Shown piece after piece: positions 18,593 to 64,000 of a stretch of DNA of 64,000 nt. Numbering within the stretch: position 1 is the stretch's first letter; the number at the start of each line of letters is the position of its first letter. The stretch is from positions 74,090,001 through 74,154,000 of the forward strand of contig NW_027266264.1 of NCBI RefSeq assembly GCF_022045235.1, given 5' to 3'. The position numbers and the translations under genes were made by a program. The stretch is from Haliotis cracherodii (taxonomy: Eukaryota). The notes below the pieces were generated by a model. It was not told the origin of the DNA, did not search any database, and saw only the letters and a program-made list of their open reading frames with translations.

Positions 18593-20858
18593 TTCATTCA
18601 TTCATTCATTCATTCATTCATTTGTTGAATGCTGCACTTAGCAATATTCAAGCTTATGACACAGCCTTTACATAATCATTTCTGGACCAGACAATCCAGT
18701 GATTGATATTGTGAACAATAATTCACACTATCAGGGTACGAAGACATGCAAACAACCACGTCACCATGTCTGACCTTGGTGCAGCAAAGGTTGCCCACAG
18801 GGGACAAATTCTAACCCGGATTCCCAACTGGGGCTCAACATGTTAACATACACCAGTAAATTGTTATACTGAAAAATGTCAGAAGTCTTGTTAATTCCCG
18901 AGCCAGAGTGAACTTCATGAATTATAGGGATGGGTATTGGAAATTTAAAGTGTATCACAATATTGCGATATTGCCGTTTTGCGATTTATCATCCAAAACT
19001 GGCTCCCGCAGCACATATAGCTTGGGTGAGATCAAGCAAAATCTACATTGTAGATAAAAGTGCAAAAACTCCTTGCCAAGCCTCTGAGTTTATAACAGTA
19101 AACACATGATAAAAATCGCTATTTTAAATCACCCAATAAATCGAGTATGGAAAAATGATATTGTGATAGTATCGGGGAAAGAATGAATCTCAATTTACCG
19201 ATATACCGATATACCGATAATACCGCACACCCTTAATGAATAATAATTCACATATAAAAATCTAAATATGATAATAAATAGTCTTCTAGTTAATTATGAG
19301 CTAGATGGTTGGAAAGAAACAACAATGAAAATATAAGGACTATTTTGGACACCTTAGTTAGTTTTGCTGTAGAATAAGCAATCTCAGACCAAACAAAAAC
19401 GTATTACTTTTCTGATCTTTAGGTATGGCCAAAAATGATGCGACGCTGCTTTGTTTGTTTAGCATGACATTAACAATCCTCAAAATCTAGCAGAAAAACA
19501 TATTTTGTCTCCGGTATTAAAATGCCCTTTTCGTAGCAATTGATGGTGAATGATGTCTAAACGGCATTCACAAAAGGCCTTACAATTACACACAAATAGG
19601 CTGCATAGACCGAGAGGAGTCATGTGTCATGTGCAGTTTGTACGTTTGTTTTGGGGAGAGCAGGCTAGAGTTGCCTGCCCTTGGTTAAAAATTAAAAAAT
19701 ATAAGCCTCACGCAGGTGGTTGAACAGGGATCAGAAACACAATACTTTGGCAGTCCTCTAAATATATACATTAGTTGTTTGTATAAGGAATGACACAATG
19801 TTGCATATTACAACAAAGTTGAATCTAGTTTCTATGAACTGGGTATTATAAGCATTATACAACATATCACTCATAGATACTACAAACATATAAAGTAGTG
19901 TCTAGACATTTTTTTTTTTTAAATTCATATTTTCATTTCATGATTTATTGGGATGTATATTGCGTTAACGTCAATGATTTTGATAAGCACATAACTAATA
20001 TGTTGTAATCTAATCAAACTGGTTGATAGTACATAAAATGTCATTCAAAAGAAAGTATACCACATATTTGAAAATTGGATATGACCAAAATATTACAAAC
20101 ATTGTCAAATGTAACATTTGCAAAATACTGCTAACTTAAGGAACAAAACACAACTGTGATACCTAAAACAAAGACATCACCACTGAATAACCATTTCTTG
20201 TTTGTTTCATTTTTAGACACCATCAAACAAGGGTGTATACTTTGTTTTGCCTGGCATTTATAGTAATTTATGGACCCGTGAAGATCTGGGATAGAATAGG
20301 TCTTCAGCAACCCATGCTTGTCGTAAAAGATGACCATGCTTGTCGTAAGAGGAGGCTAACGGGATCGGGTGGCCAGGCACGCTGACTTGGTTGATGCATG
20401 TCATCAATCCCAATTGCATGGATCGATTATCATGATGCCAATCACTGGACTGTCTGGTTCAGACTCGATTATTTACAGACCGCTGTCATATAGCTGGAAT
20501 ATTGCTGAGTGTGGCGTTAAACAACAAACAAACAAAACTAAATTATGTCAAGTATTGGAGCACTAAATGTAGGTATATTTACCCCATCCCACTGTCCAAG
20601 TGAATGAAGAATGAGCCTTTGTTCTTCCAGGTAAAATGGGTCTCCAATTCCTTGATATGGTTTATGGGACACAGATCGAAATCCTTGTGACGTCAACTGC
20701 TGAAGTCGACGTCTGTAATTTGAACGTCTAACTTCATCTCGTGATGGAATCGTTGGATTGAAGACAGTGGCACTTCGGGCTTGTATTTTCACCCCCCGCT
20801 GAGATGGAATCGGCAGAGGAAGGAGGGCCACATACCCCTGAGGATCTCTTGAAGGCAT
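1..20858 (-). CDS. CCDC60: CCDC60-like coiled-coil protein, 5' portion (spliced; continues beyond the left edge)
   Basis: Phase-consistent GT-AG exons: 20858-20583 (MPSRDPQGY...PFYLEEQRLILHSLGQWDG), 18195-18115 (NEGSDG...PKKTM), 12168-12095 (TAAKFVLRRTRKDLNTLKKEVDSGR), 4668-4599 (NMIRNVKLGHGLFQLIKHERETK), 4105-3969 (TAALYAEKRKKEEEARNAWQAPKRDSDSDS...DLTG), 84-<1 (YMEELMHDDDQDEFRLTLTSEPNPDPQ). KDLNTLKKEVDSGRNMIRNVKLGHGLFQLIKHE...KKEEEARNAWQAP matches my recollection of vertebrate CCDC60 (KEIINLKKDLIRSRFLIQSVKIGRGYFAILREE...KEEERNKFQP). Confidence 0.82.
2491..2921. mobile_element. MITE family M1 copy
   Basis: Same TIRs with a small deletion at the right end; TSD ATAGCATTAA/ATAGGATTAA. Confidence 0.85.
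5189..6024. mobile_element. hAT-like non-autonomous element inserted in a family D SINE
   Basis: TIR TA(A/G)GGCTTCAA; perfect 8-bp TSD GTCTCAAA; CTCGAGTA-rich subterminal repeats. Confidence 0.85.
8945..9590. mobile_element. Non-autonomous interspersed element with internal 61-bp array; second copy at ~29810-30262
   Basis: Both copies begin CCATGTCAGAA.GATGAAATCTGATTGGTC and end in a TGTAGCAGG.TCAC palindrome-rich region. Four 61-bp units at 9047-9295 versus one in copy 2. Confidence 0.75.
9684..9960 (-). mobile_element. tRNA-derived SINE family D (copies at ~11180-11480 +, ~7140-7423 -, and a split copy around 5189-6024)
   Basis: GTGGTAGAGC A box, GGTTTGATCCC B box, GTCATACCAAAAGAC...AAGGACTGGTCGGCTCGGAGTC core repeated among copies. 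Confidence 0.8.
10484..10910. mobile_element. MITE family M2 (Mutator-like, 9-bp TSD); second copy at 41256-41762
   Basis: ~67-bp TIRs (CATCGTCCCGAGGCAAG...); TSD TTGTATACA/TGGTATACA; second copy TATTGAAAT/CATGGAAAT. Confidence 0.78.
12451..12616 (-). mobile_element. SINE family A
   Basis: Full-length; TSD TGATTTACCTTAA. Confidence 0.9.
13374..13612. repeat. Nested palindrome (double hairpin)
   Basis: Layout: arm, loop, arm', arm, reverse-complemented loop, arm'. Flanked by GGAC on both sides. Confidence 0.92.
13706..14132. mobile_element. hAT-like MITE, same family as 17457-17810
   Basis: TIRs TAGGGCAGGGA / TCCCAGCCCTA; degenerate TSD ATAGGTTG/ACAGATTG. Confidence 0.8.
16641..16675. repeat. 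(TA)n microsatellite
   Basis: Direct reading. Confidence 0.95.
16703..17048. mobile_element. Tc1/mariner-like MITE
   Basis: Ends TA(T/C)CGTATT...AATACGGTA with subterminal TAAGCGCC motifs. Confidence 0.55.
17255..17420 (-). mobile_element. SINE family A
   Basis: Full-length; TSD CCATATCTTTATGA. Confidence 0.9.
17457..17810. mobile_element. hAT-like MITE (TAGGGCTGGGA TIR); other copies at 13706-14132 and a partial one from 6687
   Basis: Perfect 8-bp TSD GTTTGTTG; GGGTACCC subterminal motifs. Confidence 0.85.
18217..18432 (-). mobile_element. SINE family A with expanded (CTCA/CCCA)n tail
   Basis: Family A body; tail ends 21 nt before the CCDC60 exon at 18195. Confidence 0.85.
18538..18622. 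repeat. Compound (TTTA)n(TTCA)n microsatellite, tail of a minus-strand family B relic
   Basis: Direct reading; followed by the reverse complement of the family B 3' end. Confidence 0.9.
18925..19235. mobile_element. hAT-like MITE
   Basis: TAGGGATGGGTATT...AATACCGCACACCCTTA; TSD ATGAATTA/ATGAATAA; ACCGAT subterminal repeats. Confidence 0.7.
20273..20537 (+). mobile_element. SINE-like family B, full-length
   Basis: Colinear with 34236-34510. Confidence 0.85.
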
Positions 20859-32000: not shown

Positions 32001-35000
32001 AGGTCAGTGTTCAAAATAAAGCATGCAGTTCCAGGGGCCCTTGTCACAGGCTTTATGATTACATTAGATTAAGGAATGTGAGGGTCCTGAGATTAAGATC
32101 CTCAAGGATCCCAAGCACTCCCCTCATGTACATCGAAGTTGCTGGGTGTGTGGGATGTGTTGGCTTTGAAATTCACTTACTTATCAGCTCACTCCAGAAC
32201 AGAGTACTGCTTTTGTATTCTACATTTGAAAGTAACAAGAAAATAGTGTATTCCAAACACAGTCTGCTTTACCGTCCACACTTACAAACAGAATTGATTT
32301 CACTTCGCTTTCTACTACATCCAAGTTGTTTCACTAGATGACCATGAAGTCATATGAGCATTGACATTGGTATCTCAATTCTATCATTATAAGTTTTAAA
32401 TATGAATTAACATGTATTATTACAAAAAAAAATTATTTAACATCTATTTCCATAAAAATGTACATGTATGGCTTGAAGTTTATGAAGAAACACTAACCAA
32501 AATGGCTTCAAATAGTTTACGAATCAACCATAGCTAAACATTAAATTTTATCAGGGTACCAGTTTTTCTCTCCAAGTTGGATGCTGATTACATGATTAAT
32601 GACTTAAATCTTAGGAAGAGTGATCAATCAACATGCTATCTGAAATGGAATTCAGACACTGAATATGAAAATATCTACGAAAATGTTTGCATCATTTCTG
32701 TTCAACTTGAATGTGAATTGTATTCCTAAAAATAATTTTAAGGTTGCACTTTTCTGTGATAAATGGTCTCTGTAGAAGTTGAAATATGTAGCTCCTAATG
32801 TAGTTCTACAATTTGTATACTGTGTCAAATATAGCTTATTTACATACATCTCCTTTAGGAACTAAGTATTTTACAACTGCTTCAATAAGTTGAAAACTCT
32901 TAGTGGTCTGTCAAGAGCAACAGTACATGAGAGTTACTCCCCTTTACCCTTCTGACAGTGGTGTTGATACACATTAGCTACCTGTCACAGGTTACAGCAC
33001 AGAGAGATGGGAAAAAGTTGCACCTTCAGTTAAACTGTGGGAGAGCTTTATGAGAGATTTTAATGTTAACTTGTAGGAGCAAAATGTCTTGTAATGATAT
33101 TTTTTTTCTCAGATTTAATCAATAACAATATTGACAAGTACAAGAAATAGGTCATTGAGAATAATGATAATTGATTTTTTCTTTTTTTGGTCAACATACA
33201 GCAATAGGTAGTTAGTATATGTCTGTATGTTCATGGCTCATACTACTGACTGAGGTTTGAGCCAGTTTTCTGCAGCAGAATGCTTGCTAGTTAAACATTC
33301 ATTTTATACATTGTATGAATGTAGAGATGTCATGAACAAGCAGGACCAGTTTTCAGACTGTTGTAAAAGATCTACATTAGGTTGTCTGTAGTACAGCCTT
33401 TCTTATAGGAGATTCTGTTTCTGTAGTTAGACAAAAATATTTGTACTTTTTGTAAGTTTGACTGGGCTGACAAAACATGTTTATGAAAATGGCCGGTCTT
33501 ACAATTGACCTTCATCTTGATGTTGTTCTTGTCTTGAGTGTGTTGTTACCTCTTATGATACTGTGAGTTTTATGAGGGTCAAAGTGTTGATTTGAAGTTT
33601 ACAATTGTGAACATACTTACATTTTCTTGACAAAGCAGTTTCATGTTTGATCAGTTTCAACTTTCACTTTCATATCTTTATTCAAGATACATATTTTGTC
33701 TAGTTTACTTAGACTACTTTTTGTCATTGCAACTAAAGAAAACTCATTGCATGCTGACTGTTGCAACAGGTCGCAAGCAAAGTGCAGAGAGGGTGCGATC
33801 AACTAGTCAAGATAGCAAGGAAAAAGGTATGAATTATGTGCGAAGGCAGTTTTCAAGAAGTAGCCTGGATAAGAAAGTAATTTGAAAAAGTCACTGTTAG
33901 CTGGTTATCAGTGCATCAGACCATTGAGAAAAATCAAGAGTTGAAATTCATTTGTTTCACATGTAGATTTCAAGACATCCATTATCACATAGATTTCAGA
34001 AATGATAAATTCTGTATCACAAATAAAACATATGTCTAGATTGACAAGTTGTGTCATTAGAGAGCAAGGCAAAGTTCCTTGGCAGCTGTTTATTTCACAA
34101 AACAATGACATTTGTCTGTCACTAAGTATTTCTTCACTAAATATTTGTCTTTGTGGACTTTCCTAATAAGTAATTTGACCCCATGGTCCCAAGCACTCTT
34201 TCTCATGTTGTAAGAAGTGACTACAGGAATAATTCGACCCGTGAAGATCCGGGGTAGAATACCGGTAGGTCTTCAGCAACCCATGCTTGCCGTAAAAGGC
34301 GACTATGCTTGTCGTAATAGGCGACTAACAGGATCAGGTGGTCAGGCTGGCTGACTTGATTTATACATGTCATCGGTCCCAATTGCGTGGATCGATGCTC
34401 ATGATATTAATCACTGGATTGTCTGGTCCAGACTCGATTATTTACAGACTGCCGTCATATAGCTGGAATATTGCTGAGTGCGGCGTTAAACAACAAACCA
34501 AACCAAACCAAAAAAACATGAATAATTCTGATCAGATGGTTAGGCTCACTGACTTGGTTGACAACATGTCTTCATAGCCCAGTGGTCTGGGATGTTGCTC
34601 ATACTGTCAACAAATGGTTTGTCTGGCCTCCAGACCTGATTGTTTACAGAGCTACTTGATATCGCTTGAATAATGCTCATTACAACTTGAAAAAAAACTT
34701 CACTCGTTCACTCACTTGTTGACATGACAGCTTTATCCATCATCGGTATCCCAGCGGTAGAAACTAACAGTTTCAGTCCACTAGTCCTTATAATGATAAC
34801 ATATAGCAAAACCTTTAAAAATGGCAAACTCTACTAGTCCTTTGGATACCTTTACTATTGGGCAGTTTGGCAAGGACTACAGGACTAGTGCCAATTCCTA
34901 ACCCTGTATCCCCATGCTGATATTGTGGCACTGTTCGTGTCTTGTGTTTTTAACTAGGGCGATTAGGTACCATTTGATCTTATCACTGTGGGGATTCCTG

Positions 35001-44000: not shown

Positions 44001-47000
44001 GAAATCGGTGAAGGATCCACATCTCCGCTGCCCGGATCTTTTTACACTGTGTCTTCCGAACCCGAAAGTGACTTCCTCACTTATACCAGAGTCGTCAATG
44101 AGAGGAAACGACAACAGGCTTTTTGCAGAATGTCTGACCACTCATTCGCTTCCTCATCGCCTTGAAAGTCCACCTAAGACATTGTCCAAGTCTACCTTGA
44201 TGTTTGCGCCTCCAGCAGTGATGCCTCAAGAAACAGCGCCTTCAGCAGCAGCACCTTCCAGCAGCACCTTCCACTCATTGGCTTCCTCCTCGCCTTGAAA
44301 GTCCACCTAAGACATCGTCCAAGTCTACCTAGACGTCTGCGCCTCCAGCAGTGATGCCTCAAGAAGCAGCGCCTTCAGCAGCTGCACCTTCCAGTGCACA
44401 GGATGCACCTCCCACTTGGGCTCCGCAATTGATGGATAATTCCAAACTCTGTTAGCTGAGGTGGCAGCAGTTAGATGCAACTACTCACTTTGACAGAGCA
44501 TCCCACCTGTTCGTCGACGCCTCACTCCTGGGATGGGATGCCCACTTCTTGGACCATACAGCCTCAGGGCTGTGGTCTCCAAAACAAAAGCAGTGGCACA
44601 GTAACAACTTGGAACTGGAAGCTGTCATCCTGGCAGTACAGTATTGGGCTCATCAACTGACCAATGCCAAGCTGCTGTTTGCCACGGACAACACAACAGT
44701 TCGTCTGGTTCATCAACAAACAGGGATCGACCCACTTGAGCTCCATTATCTAATAGACAGGATTATACTGGAGACCAGAACGATTCACATCCCTGGGTGC
44801 AGAAATGTCCTGGTCGATGCACGATCAAGGCTGGACCGCCCACCCCCCACAGAGTTAAAGCTGTATCTGGAGTCCTTCCATCCACTGTGCCAGCAGTTTG
44901 GGCAGCCGAACATCGACCTGTTTGCCACAAGACACATCACGCAGTTGTCAACGTTCGTGTCTCCAATGCAAGACCGTCAATGCCCTGGCCTTAGACTGAG
45001 AAGGTCTCAGCACCTACACGTTTCTCCCACCAGCACTGCTCCCTCGGGGAGAGCAGCCCAAGCCATAGCTCAGGCTCTCACACCATCCACCAGTCAACTA
45101 CAGGGGACTGTATAATGGTTGATCAATGGGCCTCCTTTGAGATCTTCTGTTACTCCCACAAATGCAATGGCGCAATTCGTAGCGGATTACATGCTCCACC
45201 TGAGAACAGAGAAACACCTTGAGGGTGGTACTATAGCCATATACCTCTCCGCCATCAATACTGTCTGTGCTTTTGCTCAAGACTGGAAGCTATCCACAAT
45301 ACTGGAGTTGACGGCTATCATAAGGAGTTGCAGGTTGAACTTCTATCCTCCCGCAACGCCCCAATAAACCACTTGACAAGGCCTCTTTCCAGCTCTTGAC
45401 TCAGAAGACTGACTTCCTACTAGCTCTAGCTACGGCAGCCAGTTTTAGCGAGCTACTTGAGCTAAATGTCACTTGAGTCCAGTGGGAACAACACTACAGA
45501 GGTACAGAGGGTCCGTCCATCTTAGCCTGTGCTGGGATTTTATTGCCCGAAAACCAACAGCCTGGCCAACCAGATAGACATTTTACTATGCCACCCATCC
45601 ATTCCATCGTAGGAATGGAGGACCAGGATGCTACATAGAAGCAGCGAGGCCCAGAAGAATGACTAGACGCCACCTGTTCATTACCATCTTTCTGACTTGT
45701 AAAGGAGAGACCTATGATGCAGCAGGATTGGAGCAGGACCAACAACCTGCATGAGATCTGGGCCCTGGCTCACAGCGGAAACTGTTCAGTCGAATCCGTC
45801 ATGCTGGGATGCTTTTGGAGCTCTACCACTGTCTTCTCAAGCCATTACCTCTGGGATGAGTCCCAAGAAGATGTGGATGCGTGCATAATGTTGGACCGTT
45901 CGTAGTCGCCCAGCAGATCACCAACCTCAAGAAACGCTGGTCGACTGCGACGCAGCCTACCCCTACCCCCTTGGTCTAACCATTCCCAGGTTTGAAGAGG
46001 GGAGGAGTGGTAGTAAGCATTTTCAGTTTATCAAAACTCTTGGTTTTAGGTTATCTTTTTACTGGATCGCGATGATAGCCCTGGTCTGGGACTTGGTTAC
46101 CTTTTGGTTAGCCTAGATCTCCTTAGAGTTGTGAAGGTTATGTCTGATTGTTCACATGTGCTACTGTTGCAGGTGTTCACTGCCAAGGGAGTTGTGGAGA
46201 CAAACCATCTCAGGCAAGCCCAACCTACAGGAACACTTTACAAAATGCCATGACATGTAACAGATATCCTAGCACTGTAATGCAGGATAAGTTAAAAATA
46301 TTCCATAATCAGAGTATGATTATGTTTATTTTATATACTTATCCTGCATTACCCAAGGGCCGCCCCGTGACTGATGTCTTCCTTCCCACTGTACCGTCAG
46401 CCCTGAGGGACATTTGAAGACAATAATGGCATAAAGGTGTCTTCCAACACCAGGTGTCACGAGGTCATAGAGATCATGTTGGCCGAAAGAGTTACTGAAG
46501 ATGCTGATAGATTGTCATTCATTTCCCATTAGAACTTCGGTAGTAAGAGCAATGTGTAATGCAGGATAATTATATGAGATAAACATGACTCGCTGATTAT
46601 GGAATATATGTCAATCTGTGACAGCTGCCGGAGTCTGAGAAGGAAGATGCTCTGGATGAGGAAGTTGAGTTTGAGGAGTGTGAGCGTGCCCTCCTGCTGC
46701 ACATTGTCAGGGTCCAGGCCGGGCTTAATGACCGTCTCGACCTGATAGAGGATCAGATAGAAGGTAGGACAATCTCACAAGTAGGGAATACGATGTTTAT
46801 TACCAGGTTAATAAGGATCAGGTTATGAATGAGAGTAGAATAATCTTAGAGTGAGGGAGTTGGGTTTTATGCTGCTCTTTGTAATATTTTATCAATTTTG
46901 TGAAAGAATTGCTGTTGTATTATACAAAACTTAAAGTTTCAGGGCCTTAAGGACACTATCCCACTTAATCTGGTAACCACGTTGTACTCATCATGAATTA

Positions 47001-50296: not shown

Positions 50297-51977
50297 TACT
50301 CCCAGTGCCAGAAGCATGCAATGTGTCTTATGACATAGGACCACAGCAGCTGTAGCCGTCATCCATATATCGGACTGGAATCGCAATTAGTACTTCTAGC
50401 ACGGCAAGGGATTAATAACAGTATGCCGATTTCATAAGGTATTTGATGTAAATAATATTCCAAATATCGAGGAATAAAGATACGGCAGGTCAACGAATGA
50501 GGTAGGAGACTCGAGCGTTCTTATGATTAATAACTAGCCCTATGTCTTTCGAATATTTACAATTTGGAAATCATGATACGATAGAATACCCAAATATGTC
50601 TAAAATTAGTGTTCTGTTCTGTTTAACGCCGCACTCCTCTTTGTTCCATTAGTGTGGCGGCGGTTTGTAAATAATTGAGTCAAAACCAGACAATCCAATG
50701 ACTCACATGGACACCTGTCTACGCAATTAACATTCATACAACCAATTCGCTGAGTATGACCCCCGATCCATTTAGTCTCTTCTTACGACCAACAGGTTGA
50801 CGAGGACCCTTATTCATACCGGGATTCCCTAAGAGTGTCAAATGCCAAGTGTTGTAATTTTATGGAAAAACAAGGAGCAGGCCTGTGACCCAGCATCTAT
50901 CTACGCAATTGGGATACGATGGTATGCATCGACTAAGTCAGGTTCGCTGACTTGGTTGATGCATGTCATCGTATCCCAATTGCGTAGATCGATGCTCATG
51001 ATGTCAATCACTGGATTGTCTGGTGCAGACTCGATTATTTACAGACCGCATTCATATAGCTTAAATATTGCTGATTGCGGCGTTAAACAACAAACAAACC
51101 TACCTCTCCGAAGCTTGGGTCAAAGACCTGCTCGTGTGGAAATATTTGAAAACTCTCCCTGATAACGTGTTGACATCCAGCCTACATTATGTTGTGACTC
51201 ACGTCTTTCTGAAACATTCCATTATGAATTGAGTCATCGTCTCCTGTTTGGTCGAGGAGAAAGTGGCTCAGAAGTCGATTGCTACGCTAGTTTCTGTGCG
51301 GAGCTTCATCATTTTCATTGCCTTGACGAGTGAGTGGTATTGCATTTCATGCCTCTGATTCCGTTGACATGGTTGCATGATGACACACACAAATTTCTCA
51401 TTGATGTAACCTTTGTATCGATGGTTACGACCGAATACCGAAAATCCTGTTTAGTTTATTTAAAGCAGTAATTGTTTATTGTTAAGCAAGTTTATCTCTG
51501 CAGCCGATGAAATGTGCAGCAACTCGACGACTCGTCTCGTATCCAAACACGGGGCTCTGTACTCGCGGGCAGATGACCATGGAGTACTCTGATCACTGTG
51601 TCGGATTAACGAGACTGATTAATGAGTGATTTCGGTGATTCGTTGCAAATCGGGTCTGTCGGAGTCGGAGTGCGAGACTGTCGGCTAAACGGGTCAAAAT
51701 AGCACTGATTTCATTGGTTCCCATCATTAGTGTCGGATGAAAGTCGATTGTCGGATTAACGAGACTTGACTGTATATGAATGTTACTAAGGGCAATATGA
51801 TCTGTATTAGTTCCCCCTAGCTTTGTACCGGCAATGACTGCAGTTATTACAATGCATTCTAGCATGAATACTCTCATTTGTACTCACTGCAGTTGGATCC
51901 CTGTTACTTGAATGAATGGCTGTATACTATCATGTGTCATGGCACATACAGTTCAAACGTACAAACAAGTGTATTTT

Positions 51978-52164
51978 CTAAGTAAGGAAAAGAATATATG
52001 GATGAACAACTTCTTTATTACAATTAAGAACGATGTGTCGATGTAGGTCCTAACACCGTTATCAAGCAAGTGATCAGTGATAACGGTAATAGGACCTACA
52101 CCGAAACGTCGCTCTTAATTGTAATAAAGAACTTGTTCATCCATATATTCCTTTCCTTATTTAG
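51978..52164. mobile_element. Penelope-like terminal repeat in inverted pair, each arm carrying a hammerhead-like motif
   Basis: ~87-bp inverted arms around a short spacer. Each arm reads TGATAAC-GGT...ACC-GAAACGTCG...AATAAAGAA(G/C)TTG, the usual layout of Penelope pseudo-LTRs. Confidence 0.65.
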
Positions 52165-52774
52165 TACTCCAACTTCTAAATGCCTTGAATACACAGTGCC
52201 ATTTAGAAAGTGGTCAAATGCAACATATGTTATATTTGGGATAACACTTTCTTAGTAAAGTACAGATTCTAGTACTTTTTTTTAGTTGTGTCCCGTCCGG
52301 GCTTCGAACCCACACTTGCCATAGAGAGGCACCTAATCGCCAGCACACAAAGTCAGCGATCTAACCCACTCAGCCACTTGTCAGAGTGGTACTCAAAGTA
52401 CGTGATCTAGACTACCAGTTGTCGGACTTTCATTTTTGTGGAAGCCTCGTACTTTACTAAGAAAGTGTTATCCCAAATAAAACATGCGTTACGTTCTAAA
52501 TGCCTATCAAAGAAGTCTATTTTCTATTAAATACAATTGTGTTATTTATACTAATTTCCAAAAGAGAAACACAACCTAAAGTAAGAAATGTTCGAAAACT
52601 ATTTGTAATACATAAATCTTTTCATTTTCAAACATTTCATACTTCAGTGTGTGCTTTTCTTTCGGAACTGAGTATTATATCATAATCAATCTCAATCACT
52701 TACACAAACCCATGTTGGGTTCCTGATTCTTCAACCACGATTTGCAGCCGTGATGTAGCTTGGATACTGTTAAC

Positions 52775-55030: not shown

Positions 55031-55585
55031 TACAGAACCGGCCTCAGGGGTGATTGTACTGGCTATACCCGGATGCGTGTGTCGAAGCCCATTTGGCAAA
55101 TTAAAGGAGGCTATTTAACCGAAGCTTCTGGAATTTAAGCCATATTGTGAACCGGATCTTGAATAAACCCGGCCTTGTCCTTAGTCTCCTACTTTATCGG
55201 AAAAGGTCAACATCAATGTTGCAGCTTAGAATTTCAGAACATTTTGATATATAGAATAATTAAGATGGTTATTTCGTGCAAGTCATTCTACAGCAGATTG
55301 TTTTTCTGGTTGTCAATAAAACGCACGTGTTCCCGTCCAACGCACCAAAAGTATTTAAACGGTACTTCCCGGATGAACATCGATGATGAGTCTTCCCTGT
55401 CTCGACAAGATTGCCTTAAATTGACTATTGAAAAGTAAATAACAATGCAAAAAGTCTGTAAGATCTTCACTGAAAGCTTAATCCAATATTACAAATTGCC
55501 TATTCCGCTCTGGTATCTTTATTGTAATTATCTGCATATATATCATGATTTATTTTCCATGATTTGTGGTGTCATGAAGTACCAA
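55031..55585 (+). pseudogene. Relic paralog of the peptide gene: last exon plus 3' UTR/flank, frameshifted
   Basis: TACAG|AACCGGCCTCAGGGGTGATTGTACTGGCTATACC aligns with 61379 onward (TGLRGDCTGYT vs TGYRRTCTGYT). A 35-nt deletion then shifts PGCVC (vs PGCRC) out of frame. Downstream similarity continues to 55585, matching ~62105. No exon 1 or 2 found. Confidence 0.75.
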
Positions 55586-56057
55586 TATAATAAAATTCTT
55601 TATTTGTTTTTTGTTTGTTTGATGTTTAACGCCGCACTCACTTATATGGCGGATGTCTGTAAATAATCGAGGCTTGGCTTCACATTCCAGTGATTGACAT
55701 CATGAACATCGATCTATGAAACGATGACATACATCAACCACATCAGCGAGCCTGACCACCCGATCCCGTTAGTCGCCTCCTTCTACAAGCATGGGTTGGT
55801 TAAAAGCAATTCTAACCCGGATCTTTATGGGGGGAGATCTTTGCTAGAAGGTCGCGTTAGGATTCAATTGCTATTGAATGTTGAATTTCATTCAGTCAGT
55901 TATAGTGTACCAAATCATTCTGCAGCGATACGGGGGCATAGGTGGCCAAATCTTCTTCGGCGTCGCAATTTGCTGTGCAGAGTTGCGTCTCTTGGGCACG
56001 CCAGAAACCTATGACCATTGGTTCTAATCTCGATTTTGTTTCTAGGTTTTCACACCA

Positions 56058-58170: not shown

Positions 58171-59251
58171 GACATATGGGTTGGAGTTACACGTTTTGGA
58201 AAATTCGTCTTTTCTGTAATATTGTCAAAATTCTAAAACTGTGATGCTATGACCTCGATCTTCACACACAGTGGGTGTTACCGTTATGACAGCATATATG
58301 TTTTCCCCCGTTTTCTTTCAATGTTCAAGTTCATGTAAAATTTCAAACTCAGATGAAAATGTATTTCGTTGAAACTATCTATTCACAATGCCATGAAAGA
58401 AACAAACGATGCACATATACTGTTAACAGAACGTTTATAAGTACAAAATGTAAGCCTCGTTGCAAAGAGTAATGTCATTGGTTATTTTACCTGCACGTTA
58501 CGTCTACATTTCATGGCTTTTTAGGTACAATCGAGCATGCATTTCCTACGAAAATGTCATAGAACGTCATACGACTCAAAAGTTGTTTGATCAGGGTTAC
58601 AACATTCAATGAAATATCAGTTGTTTGAACTTTTTGAATGATGAGATAAAAAGCATAAAAATGACTCAAATGAGCGACAAATGCGAAGTGTTTAGCTTTC
58701 ATGAAAAAGAAGAGGTTTTGCCAGAGGTGTGTGCTGCCTTTATCTACATATCCAGCACTATACATAATCCTACGAGACACAACTTGGGTAAAAGATCGTG
58801 CGAGTTCGTGTTCTCTTGTTTTCTTAGGTTAACAATTGCCTATGCTTATGATATACTCGAAATCGTACAATGGACTCCGCATTTAGCAAAGATTTCTCGA
58901 TATCTCTTTGCAAACATTTGTTATTTTCTAATGTTCTCTATCTTTTTGGATAGTATACATCCAGTGTGTAATTGTGTGATTAGATGCAAGCCATATATGT
59001 GCTTGCGATTCATATTTTTCTTTTACTCAAATTTTCCTGAAACAAACTGCTTACATTTACTCCAAGGTTACCATGACATGTTTTCTAAATATAGATATAC
59101 CATAATTTTTTTATTCACAATGCAGGTATATATTAGGTGTAAGGAGCGGCCATGTTTACTTTACATAGCAAACGGATGTTACGACTGGTTAAACGTTTGA
59201 GGCGGCCCTGACATACAGCAGTCTGGTGTAGACCACGGAGGCGAAACAACC

Positions 59252-61498
59252 ATGGCAGCTGTACTGAAACTGTGTGTGGTCCTCATCTGTCTTGGACTGG
59301 TGGAGTCACTCGGTAAGACAGGCTTAGTCCATTTAGAGTCAGCATGGTTTATTAATCACATTCTAAATTCATGAGGAAATGAGTGTAAAGTTTCATGACA
59401 TGAATGTTGTTTTTAATATCGATGCCGTTAGTCCTATGATGGGTAAGAGAAGGACACTGACGCTAATGTGGACATGTTATATTTTGACGTACAGAAAGCC
59501 TATCGAACATGCTTATATGACCGTCGATTTTACTGAAAAGTTTGGACATTTTGACACGATAAATATGAATAAGATAACAGTTGTTTGAACTTTTGGAATG
59601 ATGAGATAAAACGCATACAATTGACTAAAATGATCGACAAATGCGAAGTATTTAACTTTCATGAAAAAGAAAAGGTTTTGCGATAAATGTGCGCTGCCTT
59701 TACCTACATATCCTACGAGACACAACTTGGGTAAAAGATCGTTCGTGTTCGTGTTCAACCTCTTCCTAAAAAGAACTATTTGGGCACCTTCAAGCCATGC
59801 TTTTATATCCTATAAGGGAGTAACGACTGATCTATTTATCGATGCATTGCGTTTATTCATAACCCGCAAGGCAAGATATCAATATCAATGAAAAATACCA
59901 GTGACCTTTAAGTTGTGTGTGGTGTTGTGTTGTGTATATGATTAGGATATGCGTTACGTTTGGAAACGTAAGGGGAAGGGTCATGGAATAAAGCTACGCA
60001 AGTTTTGTGATTTAAATATTGATAGCATATCTGTGATTAACATAGCAACAAATTACCTCGACGTTACGGAGAGCGCTTGGACTTGGATTTCGAGAGGGGC
60101 TGAAGAAAGGACATATAAATGTTGTGGGCTTACACCTTCTTTCATTATGCTCACGTTTGAATTGTAAGTGATTTGTGATACAGTTGGTTTTGAACTGACT
60201 CGATCATGTTACTAAGCATCAATTCCATTAATTGGAGCCTTTTGTTTTCATGAAACATGTCCACAAATTTCACTCAAGAACCCTTTTACTGCTAAAATCT
60301 GCTCTGATATGCCAGAAATGTATGTGTTTCCTCAGATATCGTGACGCCCACGACACAATTCGCTTAATGTTTGAATTAATAGAATCTCATAAAATATGAA
60401 CATATCTAGAACTGATGCAGGGTGTTGTGTCACGCTGCTGTAATTCTTAGTGAAGTGAGCGCGCCTGCGCGAATGTTTGTGTGGCTGTGTTTTGTTGTGT
60501 TTCTGTGGGTGTGCATACGTGTACAGTATCTTATTTCCTTTCAGTCCAGGACTGCCTCTGTGACGTGTGCACAGTAACGGAGCGTGTCTCGTTCAAGAAA
60601 CCGTAAGGCCACTGATGATGATTTATTTATTTTTGTTGTGTCGAACGAATTAGATTTGTCTACTTGTTTTGTAATCCCAAATGACAATATCAAGTAGAAG
60701 TAACTGCAAATTTCACTTCTAAAGTCGTGAACACTCCATCTCACATCAAAGGAGGATGGGCCTGTAATAAGTTCATCATTTTGGCTTATTATTTTGTCTG
60801 TATTTAATTACTTGGATTGTGTTCATTTACAATGACTTGACATTTTTATTGCAGTATATGCCCATCAACAACGTATCGTCAAAGATACACCACAAAATGT
60901 GGATTTTTGGGATGGGGAAGGTGTACCAAATACCGGTGAGATTGTAACAATGTTCACTTTTTGAAATCATTTCATCAAATTCCGAGTTAGAATAGATCCA
61001 TAGCAATCTATGTTTGTCGTAAGAGGCGACTAAATGGATATAGTGATAGATCAGGTGCCTCGGTTGATTGCGTATTATCGTACCCCTTCCCAGACGGAGT
61101 GGGACGTTGTCCGCAATAACGATCACTGGTTTGCCTGTCCGTCGTCAAATTGTTGAAATACGTAAGACAGCGTTAAACAATCAAACGTAATTATCCCAAG
61201 TGAATGCGTGAAGCTAAGATATAATATAAGTCATAAATCACGTGTTATTTAACTGCACGTGTGATTAATAATATTCACTTATGAATCATGCAATCGATTG
61301 TATCACATGTTATTAATTTCAACTTGGCACAGGTAAAATAGTGCGGACAACATCTAATTCATTTTCATTTATTTATCCTACAGAACCGGTTATAGGAGAA
61401 CTTGCACTGGCTATACCACTGGTTACAAGAATAGGTTCGTGTCTTGTCGACCCGGTTGCAGGTGTCCGAAGGGCCCAATTCCAAGATGTGTTAACTGA
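59252..61498 (+). CDS. Putative secreted cationic cysteine-rich peptide precursor, 77 aa, 3 exons
   Basis: Exons 59252-59312 (ACAACCATGG start, G|GTAAGA donor), 60545-60602 (TTTCCTTTCAG| acceptor, CC|GTAAGG donor), 61384-61498 (TTATCCTACAG| acceptor, TGA). Phases 1 and 2 match. Product MAAVLKLCVVLICLGLVESLVQDCLCDVCTVTERVSFKKPTGYRRTCTGYTTGYKNRFVSCRPGCRCPKGPIPRCVN. Exon 1 encodes a hydrophobic signal-like segment. Confidence 0.8.
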
Positions 61499-63759
61499 AT
61501 CTTCTGGAATCAAAGCCATACCGAACCAGATCGTGAATACACCCTGCCTTGTCCTGTCACCAACATTCTCTACAAGATCAACATCAAAGCTGTAGTGCAG
61601 TATAGAATTTTAGAAAACATTTATTCATAGGAATTTTAAATGATCGTTAAGACAATGATTTTAAGAAATTTATTCCAAAGCGCTCAGACCAGGGAAACAA
61701 TTTACAACCTAGATGTACAGTCATCCCAAGTAGAAGACATGTCATGTCAATATTTTTATCATTAGTGTTTAAACAGCATATTGTTTTTTTCTGCTTTTCT
61801 GGTTTTCTATTAAAGAAATGCAGTGTCACGTTCATATCGTGTGTTTGCCTAATTTATACATACAATAGGTGCATATTCCCATACAACGCACCAAATCAGT
61901 ATTTATATCGATAATGGGAATTACAATATCGCCTCTAATTTGGCTATTGGATAGTAAAGAACAATGGAATAGTCTGTAAGATCTTCACTAAAAGGTTAAT
62001 CCAATATTAAAAATGGCCTATTGGGCTTTGGTACCTTAATTGTAATTGTATGCAAATATATTTCATGATTTATTTTACGGGGATTGTAGTGTCGTGAAGT
62101 ACCAACCTGATTCAAGTCGGTTCCTTGTTTAACACCACACTCAGCACTATTCCAACTATATGATGGCGGCCATCGGCAATGGAATGTTATTTTTTATGCT
62201 GAACCGTACACGGGCCACTTTTAAATTTGAGAGATCACATTTTAAATCGGGGACACTGAAGATTGGTATTTTAAAGTGGGCCAGTAGTCTCTATTTCTAA
62301 CCCACACACTTAAACGTAATTTTAATGCTCACATAGCTGAATATCGGGTTTGAACTACAGTTGGAGCCCTGTTACTTGAATGAATGGCTGTACACCATCA
62401 TGTGTCATGGCACAAACAGGTCAAACGTACAAACGAGTGTATTTTTTATTTGATACAATTATGTAATTTATACTCATTTCCAAAAGAGAAACACATCCTA
62501 AAGTAAGAAATGTTCGAAAACTATTTGTAATATATTATATCTTTTCGTTTTCGAAGATTTCGTACTTTAGGGGGTGTGTTTCTTTCGGAATTGAGTACTA
62601 CATCAAAATATATCTCAATCACTGACTATTGAATTTACACAAACCCTTGTGGGGATTCCTGATTCTTCAGGCTCGCTGACTTGGTTGATGCATGTCATCG
62701 GTCCCAACTGCGTGGATCGATGCTCATGATGTCAATTGTCTCACTGAATTGTCTCGTCCAGACTCGATTATTTTCAGACCGCCGTCATATAGATATAGAG
62801 TGAACAATATCTAATAATATAGTAAAAAATCTTGTGAAATTAGAACAGAATCTGAATGCAGTGGGTCAAAACTGTTAATCTTAAGAGATTTTTTACTATG
62901 TTATCACTCATATCGCCTCGACCAGAAGTGGAAATGCCTTTAAAATCTACAGTTTATGGAATCTTAAGATTTTCTTTTGGCTGCTGATAGTAAATAACAT
63001 TTCTCACTTGTGAGCAGAATATGAATGCAATTGGTGAATACTACTAATTTTAAGAGATCTTTTACTATATTATCACCCGTGTCCCCTTGACCAGAAATGG
63101 GATAGCCCTTTCACATGTTCAATGAATGGAATTCTTTTAGCTGTTGACAATACAACTTATGAGCACATATTGAGGGGTCATGGTCCAAGATTGGTATTGA
63201 TTTTTATGAATTATTGATTATATATTTACCTTTGTATTACCGTAATCAAACTGTGCAAAGGTGGCATAACACCTTGAAAATCAACTGTTGAATATTTATA
63301 ATTAATTTTAGGTTTTGATAGAACTACAGACTTAGCAAATATTGAGACAGGTCATGATTGGTACTTTCATAGCGATTTTTTTTTATACCAGTATGTGTGT
63401 CACACAAGAAGTGTCAGAATTCAGAAATTCTTGTATTTACCGAGTGAGGGTGAGGGTAATACATGGATTCTTACATGAGTTTTGTAAAACAGAATATGTA
63501 CTGTGTACAGTTCTTTTATCAACTTCATGCCAATCGCCAAGCATGGGTACTATCTTTTCCCGTTTATTTTAACTTCCGCTCCCAGGGGTGCGATGGGTTA
63601 GCGTAGTGGTCAAAGAGTTCGCTCTTCACGTCGAAGGCCCGGGTTCGATTCCCATCATGTGTTCTGTGTGTAAAGTCTATTTCTAGTGTTCCGCGCCATG
63701 ATATTCCTGGAATGCTGCTAAAAGCAGTGTAAATACATATTCACCCACTTACTCCTTCT

Positions 63760-64000
63760 GAACCGTGAAGATCCAGGGTAGAATAGATCTTCACCAACCC
63801 ATGCTTGCCGTAAAAGGCGACTTACGGGATCGGGTGGTCACGATCGCTGACCTGGTTGATACATGTCATCGTATCTCATGATCAGGTGCGTGGATCGATG
63901 CTCATGATGTCAATTACTGGATTGTCTGGTCCAGACTCGGTTATTTACAGACCGTCGTCATATAGCTTGAATATTGCTGAGTGCGGCGTTAAACACCAAA
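63760..64000 (+). mobile_element. SINE-like family B, full-length, single-unit variant
   Basis: Colinear with 34236-34510 but has one, not two, CATGCTTG...GGCGACT units. Confidence 0.85.

Follow-up and report, generated by a model that had tools for sequence, protein, structure and literature searches.

EMI domains are otherwise known from large proteins of the matrix or receptor type, in which a single copy forms an N-terminal module. Likewise, they are described as singular and N-terminal in PMC11949838. We analysed a window of 64,000 nucleotides from the black abalone, Haliotis cracherodii (contig NW_027266264.1, positions 74,090,001 to 74,154,000 of the forward strand; coordinates below are counted from the first letter of this window unless stated otherwise), and the locus at 59252-61498 (G000:C1:74149252-74151498 in the genome, + strand) is probably an expressed four-exon gene for a stand-alone, remodelled EMI-like domain that belongs to a tandem Haliotis family. 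The comparison with the EMI domain (PF07546; EDEN superfamily) of EGFL7, EGFL8 and MEGF10/11 reveals several similarities: a single copy placed directly after the signal peptide, a V-C-T start, the core Y-x-T-x-C-G-F-x-G-W-x-R-C-x-x-Y-R-x-x-Y-R and an all-beta predicted secondary structure. In contrast to the EMI proteins, the abalone protein consists of this part only and is not continued by EGF, collagen or gC1q domains; it has S-C-R-P-G-C where EMI domains have CCxGW, possesses about six extra cysteines (11 versus 6-7), is strongly basic, comes from a tandem multigene family and is missed by the Pfam model. We therefore class the product as a stand-alone variant of the EMI kind and not as a canonical member.

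A second described system resembles the abalone family in a different respect. MgCRP-I of Mytilus (PMC4558851), one of the secreted peptide families of molluscs in which a conserved leader precedes a mature part with a hypervariable Cys framework, is likewise multigenic: its signal region is strongly conserved, whereas its mature region evolves fast around cysteines that do not vary. In contrast to the abalone proteins, MgCRP-I has six cysteines and a much shorter mature peptide, and we found no sequence relationship between the two. The likeness is, in our assessment, one of evolutionary mode only and not of membership.

Four exons and their product

The transcript data are assembled Logan contigs of four public runs, aligned to the window. 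Run X2 matches the window with zero mismatches, and its depth is confined to the exon bins and to bins with a high-copy repeat or its downstream flank, being nil in the remaining intron bins (59370-60441, 60710-60843 and 61112-61379); given this pattern and the lack of mismatches, X2 behaves as RNA of the same species. Record 18 of X2 (327 nt) spans 60544-60602, 60855-60934 and 61383-61552, i.e. exons 2, 3 and 4 joined, while record 17 covers 59245-59312 and continues directly with TCCAGGACTGC, the letters with which exon 2 opens. Both joints, 60602>60855 and 60934>61383 (GT..AG), are present in X1 and X2 and absent from X16, a run that behaves as DNA because intron and exon coverage are alike in it; a retrogene reading was rejected on this absence. 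The exon differences seen in X1 (60896-60897 and 61419) correspond to residues of the ortholog in the red abalone, H. rufescens. On the contig evidence the main mRNA has four exons, and the gene is transcribed and spliced to this mRNA in two abalone species.

All parts of the gene lie on the + strand. The short 5' untranslated region (UTR, 59237-59251) has an approximate transcript start at ~59237-59245: the high-depth contigs begin at 59237 in X1, where adapter letters abut, and at 59245 in record 17 of X2, and depth further upstream is ~100-fold lower. The coding part of exon 1 (59252-59312) holds the ATG and the 20-codon signal peptide MAAVLKLCVVLICLGLVESL and ends in phase 1 at the donor G/gtaaga. 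It is followed by intron 1 (59313-60544, 1232 nt). Exon 2 (60545-60602, 58 nt, phase 1 to 2; acceptor tttcctttcag, donor CC/gtaagg) is covered by X2 records 17 and 18 and encodes V-QDCLCDVCTVTERVSFKK-P, which contains the family-specific CxCDxC and then the start of the EMI-like domain (VCTVTERVS). Intron 2 (60603-60854, 252 nt) is removed by the first of the two joints. Exon 3 (60855-60935, 81 nt; acceptor ttattgcag, donor CG/gtgaga) encodes ICPSTTYRQRYTTKCGFLGWGRCTKY-R with the EMI core motif and is supported by the joints in X1 and X2; with 81 nt and phase 2 on both sides, its inclusion or skipping keeps the frame. Intron 3 (60936-61383, 448 nt) is bridged by the second joint (cut at +1). 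The coding part of exon 4 (61384-61498, acceptor ttatcctacag) encodes TGYRRTCTGYTTGYKNRFVSCRPGCRCPKGPIPRCVN, the remodelled C-terminal third, and ends with the stop codon TGA at 61496-61498. The 3' UTR (61499-61790) corresponds to the extent of the transcript-like contigs, X2 records 18 and 19, the latter reaching 61790, and the motif ATTAAA is located at 61809.

The original prediction, made from the letters of the window alone, had proposed a gene of three exons (59252-59312, 60545-60602 and 61384-61498). These exons, with their GT/AG borders, polypyrimidine tracts and phases 1 and 2, are retained here, but the exon at 60855-60935 had been overlooked. The predicted 77 aa, with 8 Cys, 11 K/R and 3 D/E after residue 20, are exact for the three exons joined, but they are not supported as the main product. 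Of the two junctions that the prediction implied, the one from exon 1 into exon 2 is present in record 17 of X2, whereas 60602>61384, the skip of exon 3, is not among the best 15 of 103 joints. Our data bear out its more general statement, that a spliced gene invisible to open reading frame (ORF) finders encodes a strongly cationic, Cys-rich small protein of secreted type.

The four-exon frame encodes a precursor of 104 aa. Signal peptide cleavage is predicted after VES or ESLV, judged from the n-, h- and c-regions and the V-x-S pattern, and would leave a mature protein of ~84 aa (83-85, for cleavage after residue 19 or 21) with a mass of ~9.6-9.8 kDa and an isoelectric point of 9.68. The mature part contains 11 Cys, 17 K/R and 3 D/E and no N-glycosylation sequon, and the protein is rich in Tyr, Thr and Gly. 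Its EMI-like core extends from VCTVTERVS through RYTTKCGFLGWGRCTKYRTGYRR; extra N-terminal cysteines (CxC) and the tail TCTGYTTGY...VSCRPGCRC are particular to the family. The frame stops 10 residues past the last family-conserved Cys, where the transcript-like contig enters the 3' UTR, and no further extracellular domain (EGF, collagen, gC1q or FAS1) follows the EMI-like domain in the product.

A profile of exon 4, built from translations of 12 genomic copies, had three matches among 1.84 billion representative proteins. The first, P0002 (XP_046374658.2, 'uncharacterized protein LOC124147880 isoform X2', H. rufescens, 104 aa), is identical to the four-exon product of the window at 96 of 104 positions, possesses the same four coding blocks and keeps all 13 Cys of the precursor, with its eight substitutions all in the mature part. 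P0002 is the ortholog of the window gene and is correctly annotated in H. rufescens, and at 92% identity it served as the stand-in query for the window protein in search, fold and family tools. Its retention of all Cys, together with the intact frame and the expression of the window gene, led us to reject a pseudogene reading. The second match, P0001, is isoform X9 of H. rufescens (74 aa, without exon 3), which looks like a chimeric prediction because its exon 2 and its exon 4 belong to different paralog types. The third, P0003 (991 aa, repetitive), matches through a short repeated stretch only (E 1.5e-4) and was not taken as related.

The public H. cracherodii model at this locus, P0010 (117 aa, spanning 59252-61595), equals exons 1, 3 and 4 of the window gene letter for letter and is out of frame after the signal peptide because exon 2 is skipped. 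The correct 104-aa H. cracherodii product was not found in word-index protein searches. The RefSeq entries for H. rufescens, H. cracherodii and H. rubra already include orthologs and paralogs, labelled as uncharacterized proteins, so the gene cannot be called hidden, as it had been, although its H. cracherodii model is mis-spliced. What is new is the corrected H. cracherodii gene model, the description of the family and the EMI assignment, and not the genes themselves. Literature searches returned no paper on the Haliotis family or on an EMI-only family in molluscs.

P0013, the 131-aa public model of the next paralog (g1), appears to carry the same mis-splicing as P0010. Under the single RefSeq gene LOC124147880 of H. 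rufescens, the isoforms X2, X7, X8 and X9 (P0002, P0005, P0008 and P0001) comprise exons from different tandem paralog types, as a result either of chimeric gene models or of real read-through splicing across the array.

Probable relationship to EMI domains

When a profile of seven family proteins was searched against 5.8 billion proteins, the two informative matches besides other Haliotis proteins were a relative from H. rubra (P0011, 42% identity) and P0015, a protein named 'EGFL7' from the hemichordate Ptychodera flava, with E 0.023 for a search of this size. BLASTP with P0015 gave E 2e-10 and 39% identity over 80 residues, and hhalign with two small profiles, that of the family and that of P0015, a probability of 97.3% and E 2e-11 over residues 3-72. 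The latter match takes in exon 2 (VCT...) and exon 3 and reaches into the beginning of exon 4 (YRxxYR), and the stretch in common with P0015 reaches from the V-C-T after the signal peptide through the entire core given above. P0015 then continues to E-C-C-S-G-W...C and to two EGF domains, which is the architecture of EGFL7. An Atlas model of P0015 residues 28-101 has template modelling (TM) scores of 0.54-0.71 to the N-termini of EGFL7, EGFL8 and MEGF10/11 clusters; PF07546 is carried by 97-98% of the members in the EGFL7/8 and GD13445 clusters matched by this model, and for the MEGF10/11 clusters other families are among the three listed. The link of the abalone protein to EMI domains is indirect and runs through this one bridge protein, and a word-index search with its EMI part retrieved 2 candidates only and added no information.

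Further evidence comes from the abalone genome itself. On C3, an exon encoding VCSHTASTSVSYQDKYTSSCGFIYWSRCNHYRTK, with the same motif as exon 3, is followed by ...YRIHSWTVYECCNGWRSTNGVDC (...YECCNGW...C) and then by an EGF exon. Behind the YR motif of this EMI-EGF gene there is an intron that agrees in phase (2) with intron 3 of the window gene and is offset from it by two codons. The window gene has a single EMI-like domain, which starts at residue 28-29 after a signal peptide of 19-21 residues. C29, C55 and C63 align with C34, C58 and C66 of P0015, and the extra cysteines are found at positions 24, 26, 42, 74, 92 and 94. Taken together, it appears rather likely that a divergent domain of EMI type is encoded by exons 2 and 3 along with the beginning of exon 4, and that in the remainder of exon 4 sequence particular to the family has replaced the CCxGW end.

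The original prediction had noted a loose echo of a shortened EMI domain and at the same time assigned the peptide to no recognised family. The hunch has gained from the profile matches to P0015 and from the structural match of the P0015 domain to EMI clusters, and in the strict sense the statement on the family no longer holds for a divergent EMI-like domain. The domain looked shortened because the exon that was skipped encodes the EMI core RYTTxCGFLGWGRCxxYR. The exclusion of other families in the prediction is in agreement with our results: Pfam searches with P0002, P0001, P0004 and P0007 gave no match to CS-alpha-beta defensins, macins, big defensins, WAP, Kazal or Kunitz domains, only rows at chance level. 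The family profile had no match among PDB sequences at E up to 10. In the ESM Atlas the ortholog had neither a usable match nor a model.

Genome-wide there are ~30 occurrences of the EMI-core exon (RYTTxCGFxGWxRCxRYR), beside differing partners. In the C3 copy (L048, G000:C3:25339400-25349399, minus strand) it lies upstream of the CCNGW exon and the EGF exon, and on C56 at 7.0-7.1 Mb (L050, G000:C56:6998700-7008699, minus strand), where at least 6 copies are clustered, it precedes a thrombospondin-type-1-repeat-like exon. This distribution suggests that the first half of the EMI domain may have been spread by exon shuffling.

Tandem copies and their divergence

A six-frame search of the genome gave 13 matches to exon 4, 33 to exon 3 and 8 to exon 1. 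By tblastn, which covered 80 kb beyond the window, and by inspection of splice sites we found ten further units at C1:74.169-74.224 Mb (17-70 kb downstream) and one on C12. The units have the four-exon layout in common, with nearly identical splice-site contexts, and all paralogs keep exon 3 and the splice sites that flank it. A number of units are incomplete or damaged: the signal exon is missing from some, one has AT for the GT of a donor, and two consist of exon 4 only. Within the window, tblastn for paralogs revealed nothing besides a relic at 55031-55609 (+ strand), which comprises an exon 4 with its acceptor and a frameshifting deletion of 34 nt, and a 3' UTR and downstream region that are ~70-80% identical to those of the gene; exons 1-3 of this relic were not found. 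The local duplication that had been predicted is present as both a tandem family and a relic. The gene thus belongs to a tandem birth-and-death family, restricted to Haliotis in the searches run.

The complete copies keep the cysteines of CxCDxC in exon 2, two in exon 3 (C...RC) and four in exon 4 (TC, SC, GC and xC), although one paralog reads CCDxC in exon 2 by deletion of one residue. Cys42 and Cys102 are restricted to the window gene and its ortholog. Across 8 genomic copies the signal exon hardly varies; its nucleotide identity among copies is 96.5-98%, and its ratio of nonsynonymous to synonymous differences (pN/pS) is 0.11. Exon 2 has 72-89% identity among copies, which is no higher than the identity of intron 2 (~85%, 84-86%), and a pN/pS of 1.27, while the ratio is 0.96 for exon 3 and 0.58 for exon 4; all these ratios are crude statistics from six paralogs, short exons and non-independent pairs with possible gene conversion. 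The mature exons seem to evolve at or above the neutral rate while the signal exon is held almost invariant, a clear pattern, as judged from the copies, of a conserved leader joined to a freely or adaptively diverging mature part. The family combines leader conservation, an invariant Cys scaffold, and tandem copies with relics. It shares these traits with secreted peptide families whose leader is conserved while the mature region is hypervariable, a grouping by evolutionary mode and not by homology.

Several repeats lie in and around the gene. The flanks of the relic at 51843-52733 resemble 62316-62669, and this likeness points to an old tandem duplication unit. A segment of ~270 nt just upstream of the gene (58545-58813) is repeated at 59499-59756 in intron 1 with 77-88% identity. 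A very high-copy repeat resembling short interspersed nuclear elements (SINEs) is located at 60973-61137 in intron 3 and at 62667-62700, with further copies at ~20285-20405, 34266-34425, 50766-50971, 55721-55829 and 63772-63928. Its summed contig depth reaches up to millions in the DNA-like run, and it is responsible for the spurious joints 61033>62667 seen in all runs. Elsewhere in the window, a GC-rich region at 44549-45112 contains an ORF that matches the RT_RNaseH domain (E 8.7e-5), a retroelement fragment.

Possible roles and alternative explanations

A number of results weigh against the interpretation of the locus as an expressed gene for a stand-alone EMI-like domain. The Pfam EMI model matches neither the exons and the locus nor the ortholog P0002 and the paralogs, even with E values of up to 10 admitted, and a six-frame genome search with PF07546 yielded 5 weak matches, none of them in the cluster; given so few and weak matches, this profile is insensitive here when applied exon by exon. 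The EMI status of P0015 itself rests on predicted-structure similarity and architecture, as Pfam makes no EMI call in P0015 either, by which the Pfam model appears insensitive to the invertebrate subtype. The CC doublet and the aromatic residue of CCxGW are absent (VSCRPGC versus ECCSGW), ~5 of the 6 canonical Cys positions are alignable, and the profile alignment ends at residue 72, so that homology of the last third is unproven. For the ortholog, an AlphaFold2 model built on a 10-row alignment predicts four beta strands at 33-82 and is of low confidence (predicted local distance difference test 56.5, predicted TM score 0.21), and Foldseek against the PDB and VIA-align found no meaningful structural neighbour for it; matches of this model to pore-forming toxins and to ribosomal proteins were discarded as chance-level beta-hairpins. 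The fold comparison that had been proposed for the peptide remains without a match on these low-confidence coordinates, while the accompanying homology search did recover Cys-conserving Haliotis relatives. Finally, the signal peptide was called by eye, the classification of the runs as RNA was guessed by the tool, although the intron-free coverage does fit RNA, and the selection ratios given above are as crude as stated there.

The signal peptide of exon 1 would be cleaved and the ~84-aa protein secreted; the mature protein would be folded by four or five disulfides, with an odd Cys left for covalent pairing, and would serve as a small, basic module for extracellular binding, in the manner of EMI domains in protein-protein interaction or multimerisation. 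We tentatively favour a surface, mucosal or host-defence role as the single most likely one, because of the high charge, the turnover in copy number and the fast divergence of the mature region. A role in the extracellular matrix, the mucus or the shell matrix comes next and may be nearly as likely, because EMI domains are known in matrix protein interaction. Under this possible alternative the gene is the same, but the protein would be chiefly structural or regulatory, multimerising via the EMI-like module and the free Cys, and would not be a defence effector. The establishment of EMI domains as interaction and multimerisation modules of matrix proteins (PMC11949838 for the superfamily) speaks for it, as do the odd number of cysteines (11 here; ~9-10 by eye in the exon translations of paralogs), the composition rich in Tyr, Thr and Gly and the very high contig depth in three runs, although depth is a weak indicator. 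A divergence of the mature part at or above the neutral rate, combined with birth and death of copies, is less usual for structural matrix proteins, though known in shell-matrix families, and a literature search found nothing that ties EMI domains to the mollusc shell matrix.

The domain assignment itself can be questioned from another side, namely that the likeness to EMI is convergent or stems from one shuffled exon, so that exon 3 would be a mobile module within a new disulfide-rich fold. The occurrence of the exon-3 motif beside EGF on C3, beside a thrombospondin-type-1-like exon on C56 and beside the family tail on C1 is what one would expect of such a module, and the failure of the Pfam EMI model, the six extra cysteines, the tail that is not alignable and a structure model of low confidence only are all consistent with it. 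We nevertheless regard this explanation as unlikely: the hhalign match extends beyond exon 3 on both sides, into exon 2 (VCT...) and into the beginning of exon 4 (YRxxYR), the placement directly after the signal peptide is that of EMI proteins, and the intron behind the YR motif shares its phase (2) with that of the abalone EMI-EGF gene and lies within two codons of it.

It is highly improbable that the main product is the three-exon precursor of 77 aa, giving a 57-aa peptide with 8 Cys of a wholly new family: the three exons do join in frame, the symmetric exon 3 can be skipped with the frame preserved and RefSeq holds the exon-3-less P0001, but exon 3 is present in every transcript-like joint listed, the skip joint is absent among the best 15, all paralogs and the ortholog possess the exon, and P0001 mixes paralog types and looks chimeric.

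Returning to the four-exon gene and its EMI-like domain, proteins of at least three Haliotis species that RefSeq lists as 'uncharacterized' can now be given a family identity, that of a stand-alone remodelled EMI-like domain, and the frameshifted public black abalone model at the locus is corrected. A more far-reaching scenario, which we consider possible but doubtful, is that an EMI domain was freed from EMI-EGF matrix or receptor genes and expanded into fast-evolving basic effectors of host defence or of surface or gamete recognition. If true, this would be the first EMI scaffold used as a diversifying effector, and a tandem, cationic and fast-diverging family that consists of the domain only would represent a new use of this scaffold. 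For an animal that is critically endangered and affected by disease, the family thus provides a concrete candidate for a part in mucosal defence or in the biology of the matrix.

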